DNA of 64,000 bases from Chrysemys picta bellii (Eukaryota): positions 3,658,001-3,722,000 of the forward strand of contig NC_088802.1 of NCBI RefSeq assembly GCF_011386835.1, read 5' to 3'. The notes under the pieces are model-generated. The model was not told where the DNA came from. It saw only the letters and a list, made by a program, of their open reading frames with translations, and did no database searches. This document shows, piece after piece, positions 50,948-64,000 of this stretch (position 1 is the stretch's first letter; every line of letters begins with the position of its first letter). A program made the position numbers and the translations under genes.

Positions 50948-53277
50948 ATGGTGAGTGCGTGACGTCACTGTCCCCGGGGAACCCCCGCCGGGGAGGGGGG
51001 AGAGGGGCATGGTGGGGAATGGGGCAGCCGGGGGCTGTACGGGGGCGGGAGGGGGACATGCGGGGGCAAAGGGGAGGGGCACGGTGGGGAAATGGGGGAG
51101 ATGTGCGGGGGGGGCTATGCGGGGATCTGGGGGGCGGGAGGGGGGGCATGCGGGGGCAGAGGGGAGGGGCACGGTGGGGAATGGGGGAATGTGCGGGGGG
51201 GGGCTATGCGGGGATCTGGGGGGCGGGAGGGGGACATGCAGGAGGAGGAGGAGGAGGGGAGGGGGGAATGCGGGGGCAGAGGGGTGGGAAGGGGGGAGCT
51301 GGGGGATGTGCGGGGAGCCAGGGGATATGTGGGTGTGGAGGGAGCATGTGGGGGGTGGAGGGGAGGGGGGCATGCAGGGGGGAGGGGGGAGGAGAAGGAG
51401 GGGCCTTGGGGGGGTGGCAAGGGGCACCCAGCGGGTGAGCCGGCCTGAGAGCCGCTGGCTGGGGGGGAGGGCACTGGGGGGCCCCCCGGCTCGCGTGCCA
51501 GTGAGTCCCTGGGGAGAGGCCCCAGCCCCGCCTGCAGGGAGATGCCCCCTCGCTCGGCGTGGAGGGACCCTGGGGTGCTGACGTGCGCCACCCCCCACTC
51601 CCGGGCCTGATGGCTGGCCCCAGGGCTTGGGGGGGGCACTGGCCTGGTGGGGGGGTGAACGCTGAGTGGGAGGGGGATGGGGTCCAGGGGGTGGCTCGGG
51701 GGCTGTAGGGAGGTGATGGTGAGGTGCCCCAGACCAAGGGGGCGGTCGGGGGGGTGGGGAGCTGTGATGTCTCTGTCTCTCCATGGGGGTCTCTCATCGC
51801 CCTCCCCCCCATTTCTCGCCAGCTTTTCTATTCGTTCTTCAAATCCCTGGTGGGGAAGGACGTGGTGGTGGAGTTAAAAAATGATCTGAGGTGAGTCCTG
51901 GTGCACACGGGGATCCCCCATTGCCTGTTAGGCCCACTCCCCTCCCAGAGCTGGGGAGAGAACCCAGGAGTCCTGGCTCCCAGGCCCCCTCCTCTAACCC
52001 CACTAGCCCCCCCCCCGGAGCCAGGGGAGAGAACCCAGGAGTCCTGGCTCCCAGGTCTCCCTGCTCTAACCACTAGCCCCCCCCCCCCGAGCCAGGGAGA
52101 GAACCCAGGAGTCCTGGCTCACAGGCCTCCTGCTCTAACCCACTAGACCCCCCCCCTCCCCCAGAGCTGGGGTAGAACCCAGGAGTCCTGGCTCCCAGCC
52201 CCCCCCCCCCCCCCCCCGCTGTAACCCCTGTGGTAACACTGCCCCCTCTCTGTTGGCAGTATCTGTGGAACCCTCCATTCTGTGGACCAGGTAAGAAATT
52301 TGCAGGTTATTTCAGAGCATGTCCCCCTCCTCAGTGCACCTGGCCAAGGAGATTCCCCCGCCCTGGGGCCGGATTGGAGCCAGTGCCCCCTGCGCCCTCC
52401 ATCCCACCCCCCAAACCAGCCCGTCCCCTCTCCTGGGGCCGGGTCGGATCTGTTGCCCCCCTGCGCCCCCCCCATCCAACCCCTCTGAACCAGCCCGGTC
52501 GGATCTGTTGCCCCCTACTGGGGCAAGGCCCCCTGTGGACTCCTCTCTTCCCCAAGCCAGCCAGTCCCTGTCCTGGGGCCAGATGGGAGCCGACGCCCGT
52601 ACAGGGGACAGGCCCAGTGCCCCAATCCCTCCCCACCCCCCGCTTTCCCAGCAGAGCGAAGCAGAAGGGAGCCCCTTGCCCCTCTCCGTCTGGGTGTTAA
52701 CCGTCCGCGTGTCTGTCTGTCCTGCCAGTACTTGAACATCAAGCTAACCGACATCAGCGTGACGGATCCGGAGAAGTACCCCCACATGGTAAGGGGTAGA
52801 GGGGGGCCCTGCTGGCGGGGGGTGTGGGGAGCGCGGGGGGCAGCGGGGGGGGGGTCAGACGTGCTGATGGCATTTCTCACAGGGTGGGTCTGGTGTCTGT
52901 GTCTCTGTCCCAGCAGGGGGTAGGGCCACAGACACGGGGCGGGGGCTGATCCTCCCAACAGCAGGGGGGCAGACAGTACCCTCCCCCCCCCCCGCTATCA
53001 GGGGGTGGGGACACACGTGGGGGTGGGCTCTGACACACCCACCGCTGCCATCAGGGGGCGGGGACACACGTGGGGGGCGGGGCTCTGACACCCCCGCCCC
53101 TGCCAGCAGGGGACGCCCGCGCTCCCCCTCACCCCCCGCTCTCTCTCCCCAGCTGTCGGTGAAGAACTGCTTTATCCGGGCTCCGTGGTGCGCTACGTGC
53201 AGCTGCCGGCGGACGAGGTGGACACGCAGCTGCTGCAGGACGCCGCGCGCAAGGAGGCGCTGCAGCAGAAGCAGTGA
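50948..53277 (+). CDS. LSM2: U6 snRNA-associated Sm-like protein LSm2 (one apparent -1 frameshift)
   Basis: Exons 50948-50950 (ATG|gtgagt), 51823-51890 (LFYSFFKSLVGKDVVVELKNDL), 52260-52290, 52729-52788 (YLNIKLTDISVTDPEKYPHM) and 53153-53277 (LSVKNCFIR[G]SVVRYVQLPADEVDTQLLQDAARKEALQQKQ*). The last exon is 125 nt rather than 126. AATAAA at 54244. Confidence 0.96.
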
Positions 53278-55420: not shown

Positions 55421-56729
55421 GTGAGTCTGCAGTCATTCTTGTACAGAGAGAGCAGTGGGGTTTAGTGGGTGGGGCTGGGAGCCGGACTCCTGGGTTCTCT
55501 CCCAGCTCTGGGAGGAGAGTGCGGTCTAGTGGTTAGAGCTGGGGGGGCTGGGAGCCAGGACTCCTGGGTTCCCTCCCTGGCTCCTTCTTCCCTATTTAAG
55601 TGACCCCCTTTAGCCCCCCAGCCCAATCCCATAAGCACTCCCCGAATCCCCATCCCTGCCTGCAGCCTGGGCACCCAGGGGTTAACACCCCCCCCCCCCC
55701 CCCCGCCGCAAATGCTCTGCAAACATCCGGCAAACGCTTTGCACCAGCAGGGCTGATCCCTCCCTCTCTCCTCCCAAGAGCCCCCCAAGCAGCAGCCCCT
55801 AACTACCCCCCCCCACTCACCCAGAGGGATTACCCCCCCACACCTCCCTCCTACCCCATTCCCCATTTGCAAACTGTTTGCAGACCCCTGGCGGCCGATT
55901 GCAGCTGGTGCCACCGCTGGGTGGGGGAAGGGAGAGGAAAGGGGGGACCCCACCCCTTTCTGCCCCCCCCTTCCCAGCAGCCTTTGCAGCTGGCTGCAAG
56001 CAGAGGAGACAGGAGCAGCATTTGCAGGCAAAAGGAGAAACCCAGGTACCTTCCTGCTGCAGCAGGGGGGCGGCTGAGGGGGCCATGACAGGACCCTAAG
56101 GGGCCCTTGGCCTGTGGGGGACCCCACCCCAATATTTAGCATTAATGCAACAGGCCCCATAGCTGGAGTGCAGGGGGCAAGGAGTCGGAGTCGGTAGGGG
56201 GCGCTCTCCCCTGGCAGTCAGGGCTGGCTCCCGTGAGATGCTAGGGGGCGCTGTGCTGCAGGGAGCGGGGCTTCAGGGGTTCAGCAGGGGATGCTGGGCT
56301 TCAGGGAGTGGGGCAGGGGGCGCTGGGCTGTGGGGAGCAGGGCTGTATGGGGTGCTAGGGAAGAGGGAGTGGGGTGGGGGCTTGGCAAGGGGCACTGGGG
56401 TGGGGGGTTTTGCAGGGGGAGAGAGGGCACTGGGCAGGGGATGCTGGGGCAGAGGGTACCGGAGCAGGGGGTGTGGTGAACTCACCCCAACCCTCCCCAT
56501 AGAGTGCCGGGGGGGACTCACCAGGGGTGCTGGAGCAGGGGGCCATGGGGTGGGGTGCTAGGCATGGGGCGCCGGGTGGGAGCCTGGGCACGGGGTGGGG
56601 TACCAGAGTAGGGGGCGCGGTGGGCTCACCCTATCTCTCCCCAAGGGGCACAGGGGTGGGGGGGCTGGGTAGGGGGCACCAGGCAGGGCACGGGGGGCTC
56701 ACCCCGTCTCTCCCCAGGGGGCTCTCTCC

Positions 56730-59593
56730 ATGTCGGCGCGCCTGGCCCTGGTGGACTGGCTGGACGAAGGCTTCTCCAGCATCATCGAGCTGGCGGCGGT
56801 GAGGGAGCCACGCCGGGACCCTGCCCGCTACCGGCCGGGCCAAGAGGTGGCGGCCCGGTGCCCCCTCTTCAAGGGGCTGAACCGCGCCCGCATCCTGGCC
56901 CTCAGCCGTGAGTGAGCGAGCGCCCCCCTGCTCCGACTACCCCCCCTTGTCCGAACACACCCCTGTCCGTCCGTCCCCCCCACACCTCTCCATCTGTCCC
57001 TCCCTCCATCCGTCCCCCTACACCTCTCCGTCCATCCCCCCTGTACCCCTTGTCCGTCCCCCCCACTTCTCCGTCCCTCCCTCCTGCCATCCATCCCCCC
57101 AAACTCCCTGTTCATCCCCCCCACACCTCTCTGTCTGTCCCTCCCTCCATCCGTCCCCCCAAACCCCTGTCCGTCCCCACAACACCTCTCCGTCCCTCCA
57201 TCCCTCCCCCCATACCCTCCGTCCATCCCTCCATCCTCTCTTCTCTCTCCGCAGGGGACAGGCAGAAGTTGAAATGGATCCAAGTCCGGGCTGGGGGCTG
57301 TCCCGGGAGCAGCTGGGGGGGCAGGACGCTGCGGGGCCCCCCCTACCACCAAGTGGCGACATGGAGACGGGACAGAGTGCCCCCTGAGAGAAGGAAACAC
57401 AGCACAGGTGGGTGCTGCTCCCCGTGCCGGACACCTCGGTCCCGTACCCCATCCCGGTCTCCAGCCCCCTAGGGGTGAGCACTGCGCTGCTGTCCTGGAC
57501 GCCTGGGTCCCATTCCTCATCCTGGTCTCCAGCCCCCTAGGGTGAGCGCTGCACTGCCGTTCCGGATGCCTGGGTCCCATTCCCCTAGAGACCAAGAAGT
57601 CTCATTCAGTGACTGTTTCTTGTCTCATTCCAGGAGGCAACACCGATGACGTCACCACCTCCGTGCTCGACCCTGAAGGGACGCAGGTGTCCGAGGATGA
57701 GGGCCGGGCGACCCCCCAGAGCACCTCATCCTCGGAAACCTGGCATTCCTCCTCCCCCGACTGCCCCCACGTGGACAGCTCTGGCTGCGGGGTTCCCTGC
57801 TCCCCTGGCCCTGCGGAACCAGGCGTCCGGGCGGGGCCGACCGAGCCCTGCGCCAGGCCGGAGTGCGAGAGGATGCGACAGGAGCTGGAGGCGCTGAGGG
57901 ACCGATACGCCAAGCTGGAGGCTCAGAACGCTGTGCTGTCCCAGAGACTCGGTGAGCCCGGACGCCTGGGTCCTCGGGGACGAGGGTGGGGTCTCGTGGG
58001 TCAGAGCAGGGGGGCGGGACTGGGAGCCTGGACATCTGGGTCCTCTGAGAGGAGAGTCAGGTCTGGTGGGTCAGAGCAGGGGGGTGGGGTTGGGAGCCCG
58101 GACGCCTGGGTCCTCTGGGAGGGGAGTGAGTGGGGTCTGGTGGGTCAGAGCAGGGGGCCAAGGTTGGGAACCCGGATGCCTGGGTTCTCAGGCGCGTGGG
58201 AGCAAGTGGTCACTCCTGTCTCCGTTCTCTGCAGGGGGCGATGTGGAGCTGCCCAGGGAGGTGGACAGCAGTTCCGTGCGGCCGGAGCCCGGGCTCTATC
58301 AGGACCCTGCACTACCTCAGAAACATGGGGTGAGCTGTGGGGCGGGGAGTGGGTCGGGGGATAGTGGGAGGCCTGGGGTCCCTCTTATAACAATGTCTCC
58401 TCCCCCTCCTCCTTCCATCCCCCTCCTGTCCCCTGCCTGCTCCCCCTACTGCCCCTCCTCTCTCCACGCCCCCTACTGCCCCCACCCCACTTTCCTCTGT
58501 GCCCCCCTCCCCGCCCCCCAGATGCAGGAGCTGGTGCCAGGAGGGGGCGTGTTCCTCTACCCCGCCCAGCTGGCCCTGGCCCGCTCCAGCGCCCGCAGCC
58601 AGACGGCCCTGGCCCGGCTCCTGCTCGACGTCTTCTTCTCCCGCCAGGAGCAGGCACGGAGCAACCTGTCCGGGGAGAACGGGCTACGCCGCCTCAGCCC
58701 CCCCGTCGTCAGCGCCATCGTGGGTGAGTCCGGGGGGGTCAGGCGATGGTATGGCCCTGGGGGGCGGGGACAGGCAATAGTATGGACTAGGAGGGGCAAT
58801 GATGGTATGGCCTGGGAGGGCGGGGCCAGGCAGTAGTACGGACTGAGAGGGGCAATGATGGTATGGCCCGAGGGGGCGGGGACAGGTAGTAGTATGGACT
58901 GAGAGGGGCAATGATGGTATGGCCCGAGGGGGCGGGGACAGGTAGTAGTATGGACTGGGAGGGGCAATGATGGTACGGCCCGGGGTGGGGAGGCAGGAAG
59001 TACTGCGGACTGGGCAGGGTCCTGATGATATGGCCCAGGGATCAGGGTCAGGCAATGGTATGGCCCCAGTGGGTGGGGTCAGGCAGTAGTATGGCCTGGG
59101 GGGCCAATGATGGTATGGCCTAGGGCAGGATGATGGTATGGCCCAGCAGTGTGTTTCAGACAATTGTATGGCCTCCGTGGGGGAGGTCGCGGTGATGGTA
59201 CGGCTCAGGTTGGGCTAGGCAGTGATACTGCCTGGAGGGTTAATGATGGCACAGCCCAGGGAGTGCAAGGCGATGGTACGGCCTGTGGGCGTTAATGGTG
59301 GTATGGCCTGGGTTGGGGGTGAGGTAATGGTGCAGCCCAGGAGGGCAAGGCAATAATTTGGCCCGGGGCAGGAGCAGTTATAATGGACTGGTCTATCGTA
59401 AAGGAATTCCGTGGGGGGGATCCTGCTGCCATTCACCCCTCTTTTCTCTCCCCCCGCAGCCTACGCCGTGGGTCAGTCCCAGTTCCAGCCCAGCAGTGCT
59501 GCCGTCATCAAGAACTCGCTGCGCAACAAGCTGGGCTGCCTGAGAGCCCCGTCCCGCCAGCAGGGGGCCACCAGGGGGCGCACTGCGGCCTGA
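56730..59593 (+). CDS. Unidentified BEN-domain protein, 359 aa (BEND5-like architecture)
   Basis: Exons 56730-56907 ([19 protein letters not shown]...RARILALS), 57255-57407, 57634-57951 (coiled coil [26 protein letters not shown]), 58235-58329, 58522-58723 ([15 protein letters not shown]...[35 protein letters not shown]) and 59460-59593 (AYA...IKNSLRNKL). All GT-AG and phase-consistent (1080 nt). Confidence 0.85.
58740..59400. repeat. Degenerate intronic tandem repeat (atggtatggccc core)
   Basis: Recurring gatggtatggcc...gggcggggacagg.agtagtatggact units. Confidence 0.8.
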
Positions 59594-61215
59594 GAGCCCC
59601 GTCCCGCCAGCAGGGGGCCACCAGGGGGCACCCCGCAGCCTCAGAGCCCCGTCCCGCCAGCAGGGGGCCAGCAGGGGGCGCCCCGCGGCCTGAGAGCCCC
59701 GTCCCGCCAGCAGGGGGCCACCAGGGGGCGCCCCGCGGCCTGAGAGCCCCGTCCCGCGGCCTGAGAGCCCCGTCCCGCCAGCAGGGGGCCACCAGGGGGC
59801 GTCCCGCGGCCTGAGAGCACCGTCCCGCCAGCAGGGGGCCACCAGGGGGCGTCCCGCGGCCTGAGAGCCCCGTCCCGCCAGCAGGGGGCCACCAGGGGGC
59901 GCCCCGTGGCCTGAGAGCCCCGTCCCGCCAGCAGGGGGCCACCAGGGGGCGCCCCGCGGCCTGAGAGCCCCGTCCCGCGGCCTGAGAGCCCCGTCCTGCC
60001 AGCAGGGGGCCACCAGGGGGCGCCCCGCGGCCTGAAAGCCCCGCCCCACGGCCTGAGAGCCCCGTCCCACCAGCAGGGGGCCACCAGGGGGCGCCCCGCA
60101 GCCTGAGAGCCCCGTCCCGCCAGCAGGGGGCCACCAGGGGGCGGCCTGAGAGCCCCGTCCCGCGGCCTGAGAGCCCTGTCCCGCCAGCAGGGGGCACCAG
60201 GGGGCGTCCCGCGGCCTGAGAGCCCCGTCCCGCCAGCAGGGGGCCACCAGGGGGCGCCCCGTGGCCTGAGAGCCCCGTCCCGCCAGCAGGGGGCCACCAG
60301 GGGGCGCCCCGTGGCCTGAGCGCCCCGTCCCGCGGCCTGAGAGCCCTGTCCCGCCACCAGGGGGCCACCAGGGGGCGTCCCGCGGCCTGAGAGCACCGTC
60401 CCGCCAGCAGGGGGCCACCAGGGGGCGTCCCGCGGCCTGAGAGCCCCGTCCCGCCAGCAGGGGGCCACCAGGGGGCGCCCCGTGGCCTGAGAGCCCCGTC
60501 CCGCCAGCAGGGGGCCACCAGGGGGCGCCCCGCGGCCTGAGAGCCCCGTCCCGCGGCCTGAGAGCCCCGTCCTGCCAGCAGGGGGCCACCAGGGGGCGCC
60601 CCGCGGCCTGAAAGCCCCGCCCCACGGCCTGAGAGCCCCGTCCCACCAGCAGGGGGCCACCAGGGGGCGCCCCGCAGCCTGAGAGCCCCGTCCCGCCAGC
60701 AGGGGGCCACCAGGGGGCGGCCTGAGAGCCCCGTCCCGCGGCCTGAGAGCCCTGTCCCGCCAGCAGGGGGCACCAGGGGGCGTCCCGCGGCCTGAGAGCC
60801 CCGTCCCGCCAGCAGGGGGCCACCAGGGGGCGCCCCGTGGCCTGAGAGCCCCGTCCCGCCAGCAGGGGGCCACCAGGGGGCGCCCCGTGGCCTGAGCGCC
60901 CCGTCCCGCGGCCTGAGAGCCCTGTCCCGCCACCAGGGGGCCACCAGGGGGCGTCCCGCGGCCTGAGAGCTCCGTCCCGCCAGCAGGGGGCCACCAGGGG
61001 GCGTCCCGCGGCCTGAGAGCTCCGTCCCGCCAGCAGGGGGCCACCAGGGGGCGCCCTGCAGACTGAGAGCCCATCCCACCAGCAGGGGGCGCCCCGCGGC
61101 CTGAGAGCCCCGTCCCGCCAGCAGGGGGCGCCCTGCAGCTGAGAGCCTGTCCCCGTGGCAAGGGGCCACCAGGGGAACCCCGTGGCCTGAGGGCCTGTCC
61201 CACCAGCAGGGGGCC
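59548..61215. repeat. ~50-bp CTCF-motif minisatellite with a 576-bp higher-order duplication
   Basis: Unit gcctgagagccccgtcccgccagcagggggccaccagggggcgccccgcg. Variant landmarks recur exactly 576 bp apart (59811/60387 and 60032/60608). Confidence 0.95.
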
Positions 61216-63352
61216 ATGCCACGGCCTGACACCTGGCATTCTCCCAGCAGGGGTGCCCCGGAGAGCTGTGAATGGGGCGTGATTCTGATCTCAATACAGA
61301 AGGTTTTTTGACACCTCTGAGTCCCTGGCTCTTTATCTGTGGGAGGGACTCAGGACTCCTGGGTCCTCTTCTGGCTCTGGGAGGGGAGTGGGGCCTAGTG
61401 GTTAGAGCAGGGGAGACCGGGGGGGGGGGGGCTGGGAGCCAGGACTCTTGGGTCTTGGCTCTGTGAAATTTCCCACTCCAAAGAGGACCCCGAGGAAATG
61501 ATCTGAAAGCGCTGAGGTGACAGTTTACGCGGGGGGGGACGGGACTGAGCACCTAACTCCCCCCCACTCACACACCCACCCCTCCTGTTCTAGCCGGGGA
61601 TGGGGCAGGACCCTGATCTCAGGAGTCCGGGCCAATCCCAGCCTGAATAATTCTCCCCGACTTCCAACGCCCTCTGAAGTTCAATAGAAATTCGCCTGCC
61701 CATGCTGGGCTGGATCTCCTGCCCCACCCCCCATTTCTCCTGCCCCACCCCTCTGGCACCCCCAATCCCTTCCCTATAGCGCCAATCACGATACACTGAG
61801 CTGCAGTGACTCACTCCCGCCACCAGGAGACGCTCCCCAGTGCCTTCCCTCTCTATGGCCTTTTCCTGCTGTAGGGAGCGTGGCTCGGCCTCTCTCTCCA
61901 CCGGCCCGTAGCGCTCTATGGCTCTCCAAGTGCCGGTCGTGTGGCTGAGGACCCCAGCTGGGGCTGGCTCGGCAGGTGCCTGGCCAGAAATAGCCCGCTC
62001 CCCGGCTGAGCTAGTGCGGAGCGGGGCTGGGGGCGTCCCCGGGGACTGGGGGTGACCCGGGCAGCGCGGGCCGGGGGGCGGGGAGCAGCTGTCGCGAGGG
62101 GCGCTGGGATCAGGCGGCGCCGCGGGCAGCCCGGGGCGGGTCCTGCAGCCGGGGATCGCCAAAGGCGGAGACACGTGGGGCCGGGAGCAGCTGCCGGGAG
62201 AGCAGGTACCGGGGGGGGGGGCTGGTGCCTCCTGCCCCTCCGCCCCATAACCACCTTGGCCCCGCCCCCACAGCCCCCTCCTGCCCCATCAACCCCGCCT
62301 CCCAGCACCATCCTCCCCTGCCCCATAGATCTCCCGGTCCTAGTCCCTCCCCTGCCCCACAGCCCCTCCGTCATCACCTCCTGCCCCGTAGCCCCCCAGC
62401 ACTGACACCTCCTGCCCCATAGACCCTCCCAGCCCCCAACCTTCCCGTCCTAATCCCCACAACCACCCCCTGCCCCACAGGCCCCCACAGTACCGCCTGC
62501 CCTTCAGCTTCCCAGCCCTGACACCCCCGGCCCCATAGATCTCCCAGTCCCCCACCTCCCCGCCCTAGCCCCCTCGCCCACACACTACGCCAGTTCCCCG
62601 CCCTACAGCACTTCCATCATCACCTCTGCCTCACAGCCCTCCATCTCCCCATCCTAGTCCCCCTAGGGCTGCGGCCCCCTGCCCCCTTCCCTACCCCCCA
62701 GCCGCTCTGTCATCATCCCTGTCCCACAGCACGCAGCCCTGACACCCCCCACCCCCATAGAACCTCCCTGGCCTAACAACCCCTTCCTCCTGCCCCCCTC
62801 CTGCCCCCCTCAAATGATCCTGACGGTACCACTCCCCCCCCAGTTGCATCCCCCCGTCCTCAGTTCATACCCCCATCTGCCCCCCTCTGAGCTGCCTGGG
62901 GTTCATCCTGTGATGGGTGGGGGGTGGGGCTGGTACCTAGGGCCATGGGCTGGGGCTGGGGGGTTGCTTGGATCGCCCCCCCCCTACCGCCAGTGATAGC
63001 TCCCTTGGCCCCGCCCCAGGGAGAGGTTTCTCGGAGGCGGGTCCTGGCACTGGGATTGCATCAGCCCAGCCGGTGTCAGAGCCCAGCACCGGGGCAGGTG
63101 GGAGCAGCTAGAGGGGACAGGCCTCTGCCCCGTTCCCTGCCCCCCGAGCCAGCCGGTCCCTGCCCTGGGGCAGATGGGAGCTGGCGCCCCCTGCAGGGGA
63201 CAGGCCCCTGTCCCATTCCCCACCCCCTGAGGCAGCCGGTCCCTGCCCTGGGGCAGATGGGAGCTGGCGCCCCCTGCAGGGGACAGGCCCCTTGTCTCAC
63301 CAACTGTGTCTCTCCGTCCCCAGGTGTGTCTTCGGGGTGCTCAGCCCTCGCC

Positions 63353-64000
63353 ATGCCCACCCTGTACCTCTCCCCGCACCCGGACAATTTCCAGAACCAG
63401 CGGGTGCTGATCGCAGCCCGCTATGCCCCCACGCTGCCCGAGGTGGTGGAGCTGCCGGAGCAGGGGCTCCCCCTGCGGCCCCCTGCCTCCTGCCCCCTGC
63501 CCAAGCTGCCGGCGTTGGAGAGCCGGCCGGGGGTCTGGGTCTCGGGCCCGGCCGCCGTGGCTCAGCTCCTGTGCCCGGAGCGGCTGAGGGGGCAGGGGCC
63601 AGCGGGGGGCGCTCTGGTGCAGCAGTGGGTGAGCTACGCTGACGGGGAGATCGCCCCTGCTGCCTGTGCAGCCGCCTTCTCCGCCCTGGGTCTGGCGGAG
63701 CAGAGCAAGCAGGTGAGACCTCCCGGACTCCTGGGTTCTCGGGGAGGGGAGTGGGATCTAGTGGTTGGGGGGGGGGAGCTAGGACTCCTGGGTTCTTAGG
63801 GAGGGGAGTGGGGTCTAGTGGTTAGAGCGGGGGCTGGGGAGGGGGAGCTAGGACTCCTGGGTTCTCGGGGAGGGGAGTGGGATCTAGTGGTTGGGGGGAG
63901 GAGCCAGGACTCCTGGGTCCCCTGTCTGTTGCAGTACCCTGGCGTCTCTCTCTCTGCCTTCCCAGGTGGTGGAGCGGGCAGTGGCAGAGCTGCGCCGGGC
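63353..64000 (+). CDS. VARS1: Valyl-tRNA synthetase, cytoplasmic (N-terminal GST-like domain; continues beyond the window)
   Basis: Exon 63353-63712 (MPTLYLSPHPD...LIAARY...AVAQLL...LVQQWVSYAD.EI.PAAC) matches the mammalian VARS1 N-terminus; next exon from 63966 (VVERAVAELRRA). A non-coding exon probably ends at 62205. Confidence 0.95.

Follow-up and report, generated by a model that had tools for sequence, protein, structure and literature searches.

The window analysed here, 64,000 nucleotides of contig NC_088802.1 of the painted turtle Chrysemys picta bellii, carries on its forward strand a gene whose coding exons lie between an LSM2 exon and the first coding exon of VARS1 (Table 1). An earlier note, made from the letters alone, had read six phase-consistent coding exons at 56730-59593, and this gene model proved correct: the introns are of the GT/AG type, all exon borders are AG/GT, and the joined coding exons form an ORF of 1080 nt encoding 359 amino acids. 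The translation is letter-for-letter that of P0003, the NCBI entry "uncharacterized protein LOC112061174 isoform X1". All five coding junctions were recovered at the exact predicted borders in contigs of 841-1195 nt from four public runs (X1, X3, X5 and X9), which belong to three studies under three organism labels and are presumed to be RNA from the spliced contigs themselves, so that spliced transcripts, whose lack the earlier note would have held against the gene, are present. Skipping of exon 2 would preserve the reading frame, yet this exon is included in every spliced contig of the four runs, and no skipping was seen in them. A minor alternative donor at 56798, observed in spliced contigs, leads to a stop codon, and NCBI isoform X2 of LOC112061174 loses half the BEN domain. 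A retrocopy was considered as the source of the spliced contigs and rejected, because the protein matches the genome exon by exon only. The painted-turtle genome holds one locus, together with short unplaced contigs and one duplicate of the last exon, and no dispersed copies. LOC112061174 is a functional, transcribed protein-coding gene of seven exons, six of them coding.

Table 1. Features of the LOC112061174 locus and its flanks, in window positions.
Feature	Position	Strand	Remarks
LSM2 exon (upstream neighbour)	52729-52788	+	YLNIKLTDISVTDPEKYPHM
5' non-coding exon	55919-56045	+	Start is a minimum, contigs beginning anywhere in 55919-55963; joint 56045 to 56718 with GT..AG in contigs of runs X1, X5 and X9
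Coding exon 1	56718-56907 (ATG 56730)	+	Tudor-like N-terminal domain, residues 1-59; spliced contigs
Coding exon 2	57255-57407	+	51 codons: helix at residues 62-73, then basic disordered stretch; spliced contigs
Coding exon 3	57634-57951	+	Ser/Pro-rich disordered linker, then coiled coil; spliced contigs
Coiled coil, residues 182-217	57846-58236	+	Spans the exon 3/4 intron
Coding exon 4	58235-58329	+	End of coiled coil and conserved pre-BEN stretch RPEPGLY.DP.LP.KHG; spliced contigs
Coding exon 5	58522-58723	+	First half of BEN, Pfam BEN positions 2-47; phase-1 intron at its end
Loop 1, SNLSGENGL	58660-58686	+	Within coding exon 5
Coding exon 6	59460-59593	+	Second half of BEN and stop codon; spliced contigs
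Alpha-5 helix, residues 329-344	59498-59545	+	Within coding exon 6
Minisatellite, 50-bp units	59538-61150	+	Tandem Repeats Finder
VARS1 first coding exon (downstream neighbour)	63353-63651	+	Window ends inside VARS1

The position between LSM2 and VARS1, also recognised in the earlier note, is borne out by both flanking exons and by synteny in two further turtles. LSM2, LOC112061174 and VARS1 follow one another in this order and in the same orientation in the painted turtle, Natator and Pangshura, and the exon structure of the gene in Pangshura and Natator is identical to that in the painted turtle. At the Natator and Pangshura loci the collinear upstream gene carries Pfam LSM, and the VARS1 exon of the window is 95-96% identical to the start of genes of 1273-1283 amino acids with GST_C, tRNA-synt_1 and Anticodon_1 domains. 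No MHC genes were identified in the window, and Pfam searches of ten long upstream ORFs (positions 1-47000) gave no match and no further neighbouring gene. From the human map, we take the LSM2-VARS1 block to belong to MHC class III; by this shared gene order alone, the turtle locus would lie there as well, as the earlier note had proposed. The first unit of the minisatellite coincides with the last 56 nt of the coding sequence and the remaining units fall in the 3' UTR or downstream; the repeat is also found in Pangshura and Natator.

The predicted structure contains all the parts that had been suspected from the translation, namely an N-terminal module, a Ser/Pro linker, a coiled coil and a C-terminal BEN domain. 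A Tudor-like beta-barrel (residues 5-59) is followed by a disordered Ser/Pro-rich linker (disorder predicted over residues 74-166), by the coiled coil (182-217, of which 186-217 are modelled as one long helix) and by the BEN domain (232-348). The pLDDT exceeds 90 in the N-terminal module and the BEN domain, and 95 over residues 232-345. The N-domain is predicted to form five beta-strands (5-10, 15-20, 24-26, 39-43 and 50-59) and carries the conserved aromatic residues W10, F15, Y34 and F47. Its closest structural matches are the Tudor domains of ARID4B, ARID4A and KDM4C (Z 7.2, 7.0 and 6.8, the next match being at Z 4.8), although values below 8 may reflect merely a common small-barrel arrangement. 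It superposes on the Tudor domains of ARID4A/RBBP1, ARID4B and KDM4A/C with an rmsd of 1.6-3.0 Å over 54-61 residues, as a five-stranded barrel of the Tudor, or royal-family, type is expected to do, but identity to them is 13-18%, and Pfam Tudor gave no match in the turtle protein. A homodimer prediction placed a parallel, in-register interface at residues 182-216 with a score of 0.34 (best control 0.02), a partner pLDDT of 75-76 and at least 35% of contacts agreeing between runs; this score passes the mark by little, and coiled coils are easily paired by such models. Of 30 proteins solved as one-chain pairs, 21 attain this mark, and of 23 solved as single chains, none does (17 of 29 and 0 of 30, respectively, when eukaryotes alone are considered).

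Orthologues were found in eleven turtle species, in salamanders, the axolotl among them, and, for the BEN part only, in the coelacanth. Residues 5-59 and 232-348 are near-invariant between turtles and salamanders, which also share the exon 2 motif DR.KLK.IQV, and residues 331-348 are invariant. These turtle-salamander runs span about 300 million years or more. Identity amounts to 57% over 148 amino acids with the coelacanth and to 45% over 183 amino acids with a clam, in which 14 of residues 331-348, the recognition-helix motif, are identical. Further close relatives occur in molluscs and brachiopods, Lingula and Tegillarca matching the profile from the N-terminal module onwards. Among the three turtles, dN/dS lies at 0.28-0.36 for the whole coding sequence and at 0.17-0.25 for the BEN domain: the gene is under purifying selection in turtles. 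We considered that the locus might be decaying or non-coding, its ORF kept by chance in a GC-rich region. GC3 of the gene is 85%, long spurious ORFs abound in the surrounding region, and the donor at 56798 and isoform X2 described above would point the same way. However, a dN/dS below 0.4 that is lowest in the BEN domain, the runs of residues invariant between turtles and salamanders, the identical exon structure in Pangshura and Natator and the confident folds predicted for both domains speak against decay; conservation refutes this reading, to which we assign next to no probability.

The same comparisons bear on the origin of the gene, which the earlier note had described as inserted between its neighbours and as a lineage-restricted or mammal-lost BEN factor. 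In phylogenetic analysis, the turtle, salamander and coelacanth sequences formed one clade with support 96/94, in a tree that resolves this vertebrate clade only, many invertebrate branches being long and unresolved and BEND2-7, NACC1/2 and BANP absent from it. Searches of annotated protein databases gave no match in mammals, birds, lizards and other squamates, frogs or teleosts. Mobile elements and DNA viruses can carry BEN domains, Nematostella has many near-identical copies of a distant relative, and most annotated vertebrates lack the gene, all of which would suit the recent insertion, in turtles only, of a BEN gene derived from a transposon or virus. Such an insertion is nevertheless largely refuted and very improbable: the salamander and coelacanth orthologues share domains with the turtle gene and group with it, there is a single locus without dispersed copies, and synteny is kept across distant turtle families. 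The gene also has six spliced coding exons, with a phase-1 intron in the BEN domain at the position used by four other BEN genes of the painted-turtle genome (one BEND5-like, one BEND6-like and two more). The gene predates tetrapods and, as read from annotated proteins, was lost in the mammalian line, probably as one of several losses. The term mammal-lost is supported by the evidence, whereas the salamander and coelacanth orthologues count against "inserted" and, with the mollusc and brachiopod relatives, against "lineage-restricted".

The assignment of the C-terminal domain to the BEN family rests on fold and profile comparisons, because the Pfam match is below threshold. P0003 scored 16.5 bits against Pfam BEN (PF10523; E 0.0099, profile positions 2-47 only) and the salamander orthologues 18.0-18.4 bits, under the gathering cut-off of 23.2 bits; the Lingula homologue P0029 lies above it with 25.8 bits. 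The BEN domain named in the earlier note thus stands by fold and by profile-to-PDB comparison and falls short of the Pfam threshold. In Foldseek searches the solved BEN domains of BANP, Insv, NACC1 and Bsg25A matched with probability 1.00 and TM 0.65-0.76, those of BEND3 and BEND6 more weakly, and the top 25 matches in a Swiss-Prot structure search were all BEN proteins; the domain is all-helical and superposes on solved BEN domains. The best solved match is the BEN domain of BANP (PDB 7yuk, 8yzt and 8htx), with TM 0.67-0.71, rmsd 3.1-3.3 Å and 26-28% identity over about 105 residues (7yuk alone: TM 0.71 at 28% identity), but BANP has no Tudor-like N-domain. Drosophila Insv and Elba1/Bsg25A (PDB 4ix7 and 4x0g) likewise have a single C-terminal BEN domain that superposes with TM 0.69-0.76 (0.72 for Insv 4ix7), but identity is 16-17% and the alignments begin at about residue 62, leaving the Tudor-like N-domain unmatched.

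Over its whole length the turtle protein resembles BEND5. Human Q7L4P6 and Xenopus Q3B8D4 represent the only reviewed protein that aligned full length (query residues 5-352 to 2-413, E 5e-8), and a small N-terminal beta-barrel, a coiled coil and a single C-terminal BEN domain occur in both in the same order. The likeness to the BEND5 N-terminus that had been suspected from the sequence holds at the structural level, in the full-length alignment and in the superposition of the turtle N-domain on BEND5 residues 2-70 or 2-82 (TM 0.61-0.63, 23% identity). A second paralogue likewise has an N-domain homologous to that of the turtle protein (hhalign probability 89%, E 2.2e-6). On the other hand, identity to human, mouse and Xenopus BEND5 is 14-17%, the recognition helix differs, and the turtle gene has no counterpart among annotated mammalian proteins. 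A separate exon encoding half a BEN domain is found at G000:C8:8248647-8248787 of the painted-turtle genome; we take it to be that of BEND5. In an Atlas search this exon matched only clusters with the generic name "BEN domain-containing protein", and matches to the carboxypeptidase N-domain (PF18027), sought for synteny with it, were on other contigs only. Because identity is 14-17% and a separate BEND5-like exon exists elsewhere, the turtle gene is, on sequence comparison, to be regarded as a paralogue of BEND5 and as orthologous to none of the nine BEN proteins known in human.

The latter point was weighed more broadly, since the gene might correspond to one of the named human BEN genes (BEND5, BEND4, 6, 7, NACC or BANP) whose turtle orthologue had moved to this position. 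The BEND5 architecture and the Atlas clusters nearest to the turtle protein ("BEND5-like" at 0.94, then BEND6) would fit such a move. Yet the reviewed BEN proteins all share 11-19% identity with the turtle protein, compared to 57% with the coelacanth and 45% with the clam, and this is not the clear orthology to a known BEND gene that would have overturned the earlier proposal. An exhaustive profile search found no named vertebrate BEN protein at E <0.001 among the matches with names checked. Separate BEN exons exist on C8, as described, and at C3:49836350-49836490, the latter nearly identical, across the overlap, to a solved BEND6 chain. A moved orthologue is accordingly hardly credible.

A different origin is suggested by NACC1 and NACC2 (PDB 8yzs and 7bv9), the best profile-to-PDB matches (NACC1 BEN E 0.0017, against 0.012 for BANP BEN), which cover the segment before the BEN core and whose fold superposes with TM 0.65-0.72. 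The pre-BEN stretch of exon 4 has its counterpart, by alignment, in the segment that extends the NACC1 BEN domain on its N-terminal side. Moreover, the chromosomal regions of NACC1 (19p13) and NACC2 (9q34) are paralogous to the MHC, and in the coelacanth models P0019 and P0136 the orthologous BEN domain is combined with a BTB domain (77 bits) and two C2H2-like fingers. The gene could then be an MHC-region sister, or ohnologue, of the BTB-BEN genes NACC1/NACC2, the coelacanth combination of BTB, zinc fingers and BEN representing the older state and the BTB domain having been replaced in tetrapods. We consider this unlikely. A BTB/POZ domain, which characterises the NACC family, was found in the coelacanth models only; the turtle and salamander proteins lack it, and BEN identity to NACC is 23-28%. 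The coelacanth model is without a coiled coil and starts at the exon-4 homologue, as would result if a ZBTB gene next to it had been merged into the annotation. BEND5, not NACC, gives the full-length fold match, and the Lingula and Tegillarca matches, which begin at the N-terminal module, argue that the Tudor-like layout is the older one, Lingula even passing the Pfam BEN cut-off.

The elements by which BEN domains contact DNA can be compared with those of BANP, which touches the DNA backbone through N269 and S271 of Loop 1 and also binds through its alpha-5 helix (PMC10206803). The SNLSG of Loop 1 is identical in the turtle protein and BANP. The alpha-5 helix (329-344) is present and invariant among orthologues, but it differs from that of BANP at the base-contact positions: in an alignment extended without gaps, N338, G341 and A345 stand in the places of S313, R316 and R320 of BANP. 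Since these base contacts are replaced, a preference for CGCG or TCTCG cannot be assumed. On the basis of the predicted model, the coiled coil would bring two chains together as a parallel homodimer. The two BEN domains may then bind a specific, probably two-half-site, DNA sequence via Loop 1 and the invariant alpha-5 helix, while the Tudor-like domain would anchor the paired chains on chromatin or on partner proteins. By analogy with other single-BEN proteins, the factor would act as a sequence-specific repressor or boundary factor; Insv, whose homodimers bind palindromic sites and repress (PMC4281564), offers a working model for the turtle protein. We consider the joint explanation, an old and unnamed BEN-family gene that would work by a dimeric DNA-binding mechanism and that is ancient, lost in mammals and not inserted, to be the best one, with a probability of roughly 0.7.

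Nine BEN proteins are counted in human by the literature, which views the family through mammals and the fly (PMC11472053, PMC8887127); we found no paper on BEN-family evolution beyond mammalian and fly members, on turtle class III genes, or on any BEN gene in the LSM2-VARS1 interval. We propose, tentatively and in the knowledge that it could well prove wrong, that the gene stands for an orthologous group of bilaterian transcription factors, ancient and as yet undescribed, that combine Tudor-like, coiled-coil and BEN parts. Its helix would have stayed near-unchanged from bivalves to turtles, its vertebrate survivors would be the slowly evolving turtles, salamanders and coelacanth, within an MHC class III block, and its paralogues would be BEND5 and a second, unnamed sauropsid/salamander gene. 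If so, BEND5-type proteins, for which the published domain scheme of BEND5 shows a coiled coil and BEN only (PMC9233729), would have at the N-terminus a chromatin-reader-like domain that has hitherto gone unannotated, and sharing of this domain offers a testable idea of how they are tethered to chromatin. The extreme conservation of the recognition helix points to an old and fixed DNA target. Outside the mammals, vertebrates retain at least one more BEN factor, and apparently a second, that is conserved and expressed and has no counterpart among annotated mammalian proteins. The concept of a BEN protein is left unchanged, and gene-prediction pipelines already list the locus as uncharacterised; comparative MHC maps gain a gene of the class III block that was lost in mammals.

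The unnamed BEN-domain gene was delineated by reading 56000-60400 and joining the candidate exons. Six coding exons with consistent phases (0, 1, 1, 1, 0, 1) and AG/GT borders gave an open reading frame of 1080 nt encoding 359 aa, and a database query with the open frame across exon 4, intron 4 and exon 5 retrieved a protein identical to this translation, the NCBI uncharacterized protein LOC112061174 isoform X1 (P0003). This confirms the six-exon structure that the earlier note had proposed from the sequence; the gene is already known to a gene-prediction pipeline, as an unnamed locus. Between 23 and 28% of the words sampled from a 3.1-kb stretch were present in public runs, about its exonic share. 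Contigs assembled from four runs (three studies, three organism labels) were compared with 55800-59650. Those of 841-1195 nt each spanned all five coding introns with borders exactly as predicted, and revealed a 5' non-coding exon joined to an acceptor 12 nt upstream of the ATG. The introns had no read depth, dispersed repeats excepted. Because no intronless copy was found in the turtle genome, the spliced contigs are best interpreted as mRNA, the runs being presumed to be RNA. In two runs of one study, a minor alternative donor at 56798 led to a stop codon in exon 2, and none of the contigs of the four runs used the internal acceptor of NCBI isoform X2. The introns and the upstream region are dense with GC-rich tandem repeats, whose relatives occur throughout the window and draw in read depth from elsewhere.

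Features of the BEN-domain gene, its product and related loci (window positions unless a contig, locus or residues are named; G000, Chrysemys picta bellii genome; C numbers, its contigs, the window being C12:3658001-3722000; L numbers, loci)
Feature	Location	Strand	Details
LSM2 exon, YLNIKLTDISVTDPEKYPHM	52729-52788	+	upstream of the gene
5' non-coding exon	at least 55919-56045	+	spliced contigs, joined to 56718
Coding exon 1	56730-56907	+	AG/GT borders, exon joining
Coding exon 2	57255-57407	+	AG/GT borders, exon joining
Coding exon 3	57634-57951	+	AG/GT borders, exon joining
Coding exon 4	58235-58329	+	AG/GT borders, exon joining
Coding exon 5	58522-58723	+	AG/GT borders, exon joining
Coding exon 6	59460-59593	+	AG/GT borders, exon joining
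GC-rich tandem repeats	56250-56410, 56969-57234, 57422-57585, 57954-58189, 58745-59143		periods 26-81 bp
Minisatellite	59538-61150	+	about 30 units of 50 bp
VARS1 first coding exon	from 63353	+	95-96% identical to other turtles
Common phase-1 intron	58723/58724; L006 (C3), L007 (C1), L008 (C8), L009 (C24)
N-terminal domain	residues 1-73		five strands, then helix; pLDDT 90-97
Linker	residues 74-166		disordered, Ser/Pro-rich
Helix	residues 186-217		confident in AlphaFold2
C-terminal region	residues 232-345		all-helical; pLDDT 95-98
L016, second unnamed BEN gene	G000:C13:50417972-50421804	-
L016 N-module exon	5129-5326 of locus
L016 coiled coil and BEN exon	1452-1967 of locus
L017, inverted partial duplicate of 59242-64000	G000:C12, about 3832000-3836800	-	85-88% identity
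Unplaced copy, exons 2-5	G000:C6045:219-1795		85-95% amino-acid identity
Unplaced copy, exon 1 (L013)	G000:C7132:1482-1673		98% identity

The AlphaFold2 model of the protein, built with 31 homologues as input, had a mean pLDDT of 75.7 and three confident parts, with the expected Ser/Pro linker disordered between the first two. The C-terminal BEN domain fell short of the Pfam cut-off (16.5 versus 23.2 bits, profile positions 2-47 only), which the Lingula homologue exceeded (25.8 bits). Foldseek matched the region in the PDB to BANP (TM 0.67-0.71, 26-28% identity), Insv (0.72), NACC1 (0.65-0.72) and Bsg25A (0.69-0.76), then BEND3 and BEND6, and the orthologue profile matched the BEN chains of NACC1 (E 0.0017) and BANP (E 0.012). 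Because of this fold and profile evidence, we accept the predicted all-helical region as a BEN domain, Pfam being sub-threshold. The N-terminal domain, covered by no Pfam family, reached pLDDT 88.8 and pTM 0.76 when modelled alone. Its best structural matches were Tudor domains (ARID4B, Z 7.2, rmsd 1.6 Å over 54 residues; ARID4A/RBBP1, Z 7.0; KDM4C, Z 6.8; next match, Z 4.8), and its noted likeness to the BEND5 N-terminus was borne out (TM 0.61-0.63, 23% identity). The coiled coil appeared both as a modelled helix and, when two copies of residues 178-350 were predicted together, as a parallel, in-register interface at 182-216. The dimer score was 0.34 versus 0.02 for the best control; this mark was attained by 21 of the 30 one-chain pairs of solved structure and by none of the 23 proteins solved as single chains (17 of 29 and 0 of 30 in eukaryotes). 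With partner pLDDT at 75-76 and runs agreeing in at least 35% of contacts, these predictions support dimerisation through the coiled coil.

Among reviewed proteins, only BEND5 (Xenopus, human, mouse) aligned over the whole length (query 5-352, E 5e-8), while BEND4, BEND7, NACC1/2, BANP, Insv, Elba, BEND6 and BEND2 mostly aligned from about residue 62 onwards. BEND5 is thus alike in architecture, but its identity lies within the 11-19% range of reviewed BEN proteins, far under the 57% of the coelacanth protein. Other BEN loci exist in the turtle genome. Contig C3 has a four-BEN open frame and also an exon that nearly equals the solved chain of human BEND6 where they overlap, C8 has a BEN exon that we take to be BEND5, and two more exons lie on C1 and C24. 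Clear orthology to a known BEND gene was not found: because of the low identities and the separate turtle loci, the gene is a paralogue with BEND5-type architecture and the orthologue of none of the nine human BEN proteins (PMC11472053), adding an unnamed member to an already known family. A phase-1 intron (..G|GT) interrupts the BEN domain at the same position in this gene and four split-BEN genes of the turtle genome, and is absent from the C13 paralogue and the four-BEN gene; as a sequence feature, the common position fits common descent of the five genes. The C13 paralogue, L016, likewise combines a Tudor-like N-module, a coiled coil and a BEN domain in this order, and the two N-modules are homologous (hhalign probability 89%, E 2.2e-6). 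Its orthologues (about 281 aa, "uncharacterized") occur in ostrich, crow, zebra finch, goose, pigeon and lizards, with a shorter model in Pleurodeles; its last exon shares 79-94% identity with sauropsid orthologues and 74% with that of Pleurodeles, and no mammalian orthologue was among the matches listed.

Named proteins in 90% clusters included orthologues from eleven turtle species (cryptodires and the pleurodire Emydura), the salamanders Pleurodeles and Ambystoma, one salamander-like transcript and the coelacanth; no mammal, bird, crocodilian, squamate, frog, teleost or shark orthologue was listed among these clusters. An exhaustive profile search of 1.84 billion representatives gave 123 matches, the named ones beyond these vertebrates being invertebrate: bivalves (Mercenaria, Argopecten, Pecten, Tegillarca, Ruditapes, Mizuhopecten), gastropods (Littorina, Patella), Lingula, Ptychodera, Holothuria and cnidarians. 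Alignment of the Lingula and Tegillarca proteins to the orthologue profile begins at the N-module. The Mercenaria protein shows 45% identity across the coiled coil and BEN domain and shares an identical 14-residue motif. A tree built from the 170 C-terminal residues grouped turtles, salamanders and coelacanth in a clade (support 96/94) with Mercenaria as its weakly supported sister (84/56), the remaining branches being long and without resolution. Residues 5-59 and 232-348 are almost invariant between turtles and salamanders, 331-348 forming an unbroken run, and dN/dS among three turtles was 0.28-0.36 overall and 0.17-0.25 in the BEN domain. The salamander and coelacanth orthologues indicate an ancient gene rather than the "inserted" one of the earlier note. 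Of its alternatives, lineage restriction does not hold, given these orthologues and the invertebrate relatives, whereas loss in mammals is supported, losses being read from protein databases. The BEN-domain gene is confirmed as an observation, and its interpretation is supported once corrected on insertion. In the coelacanth (Latimeria chalumnae) models P0019/P0136, which carry the name "zinc finger and BTB domain-containing protein 1(-like)", homologues of exons 4-6 are combined with a BTB domain and two C2H2-like fingers, and the BEN region is 57% identical to turtle. The models may represent a true BTB-BEN gene, which would favour a sister relationship to NACC, or an annotation merge of neighbouring genes.

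The Insv homodimer binds palindromic sites and represses (PMC4281564), and BANP contacts DNA through Loop 1 residues N269 and S271 and its alpha-5 helix (PMC10206803). By analogy, we infer a mechanism in which a coiled-coil homodimer would read a two-half-site DNA motif. Loop 1 of the turtle protein (SNLSGENGL) has SNLSG in common with BANP, but ungapped extension of the alignment places N338, G341 and A345 opposite the base-contacting S313, R316 and R320, so that the target sequence probably differs from that of BANP. Putative roles of the Tudor-like domain are histone-mark reading, DNA binding or the docking of a partner.

The placement between LSM2 and VARS1 was upheld by the flanking exons and by two further turtles. 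In Natator depressus and Pangshura tecta, both collinear with the window, the orthologue lies on the same strand as an upstream LSM-domain gene (95-111 aa) and a downstream gene of 1273-1283 aa with GST_C, tRNA-synt_1 and Anticodon_1 domains; the six coding exons recur in Pangshura, and the Natator model has an additional short coding exon upstream of them. In the human MHC class III region, LSM2 lies directly beside VARS1; no MHC genes were identified in the 64-kb window. In Platysternon megacephalum, P0013, mis-named "tetracycline resistance MFS efflux pump", combines an LSM2 exon with the 5' non-coding exon and later exons of the BEN gene, which points to read-through transcription from LSM2 or to an incorrect model.

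The minisatellite, which also occurs in Pangshura and Natator, has the final 56 nt of the coding sequence as its first unit, indicating that the conserved C-terminal coding motif was amplified into the 3' region. The partial duplicate L017, about 119 kb downstream of its source, extends from the last part of intron 5 through an intact-looking exon 6 and the minisatellite into the 5' end of VARS1, without copies of exons 1-5; it includes a 500-N gap and may be an assembly artefact. The copies on the two unplaced contigs may represent an alternative haplotype or a second copy of the gene, and the NCBI partial LOC135980683 (P0018) sits on a 2.2-kb contig. In Mauremys mutica, models P0022/P0147 (409-444 aa, 1.8-Mb contig) fuse a 90% identical copy of the N-module exon to unrelated sequence, which may reflect duplication of the first exon or a haplotig.
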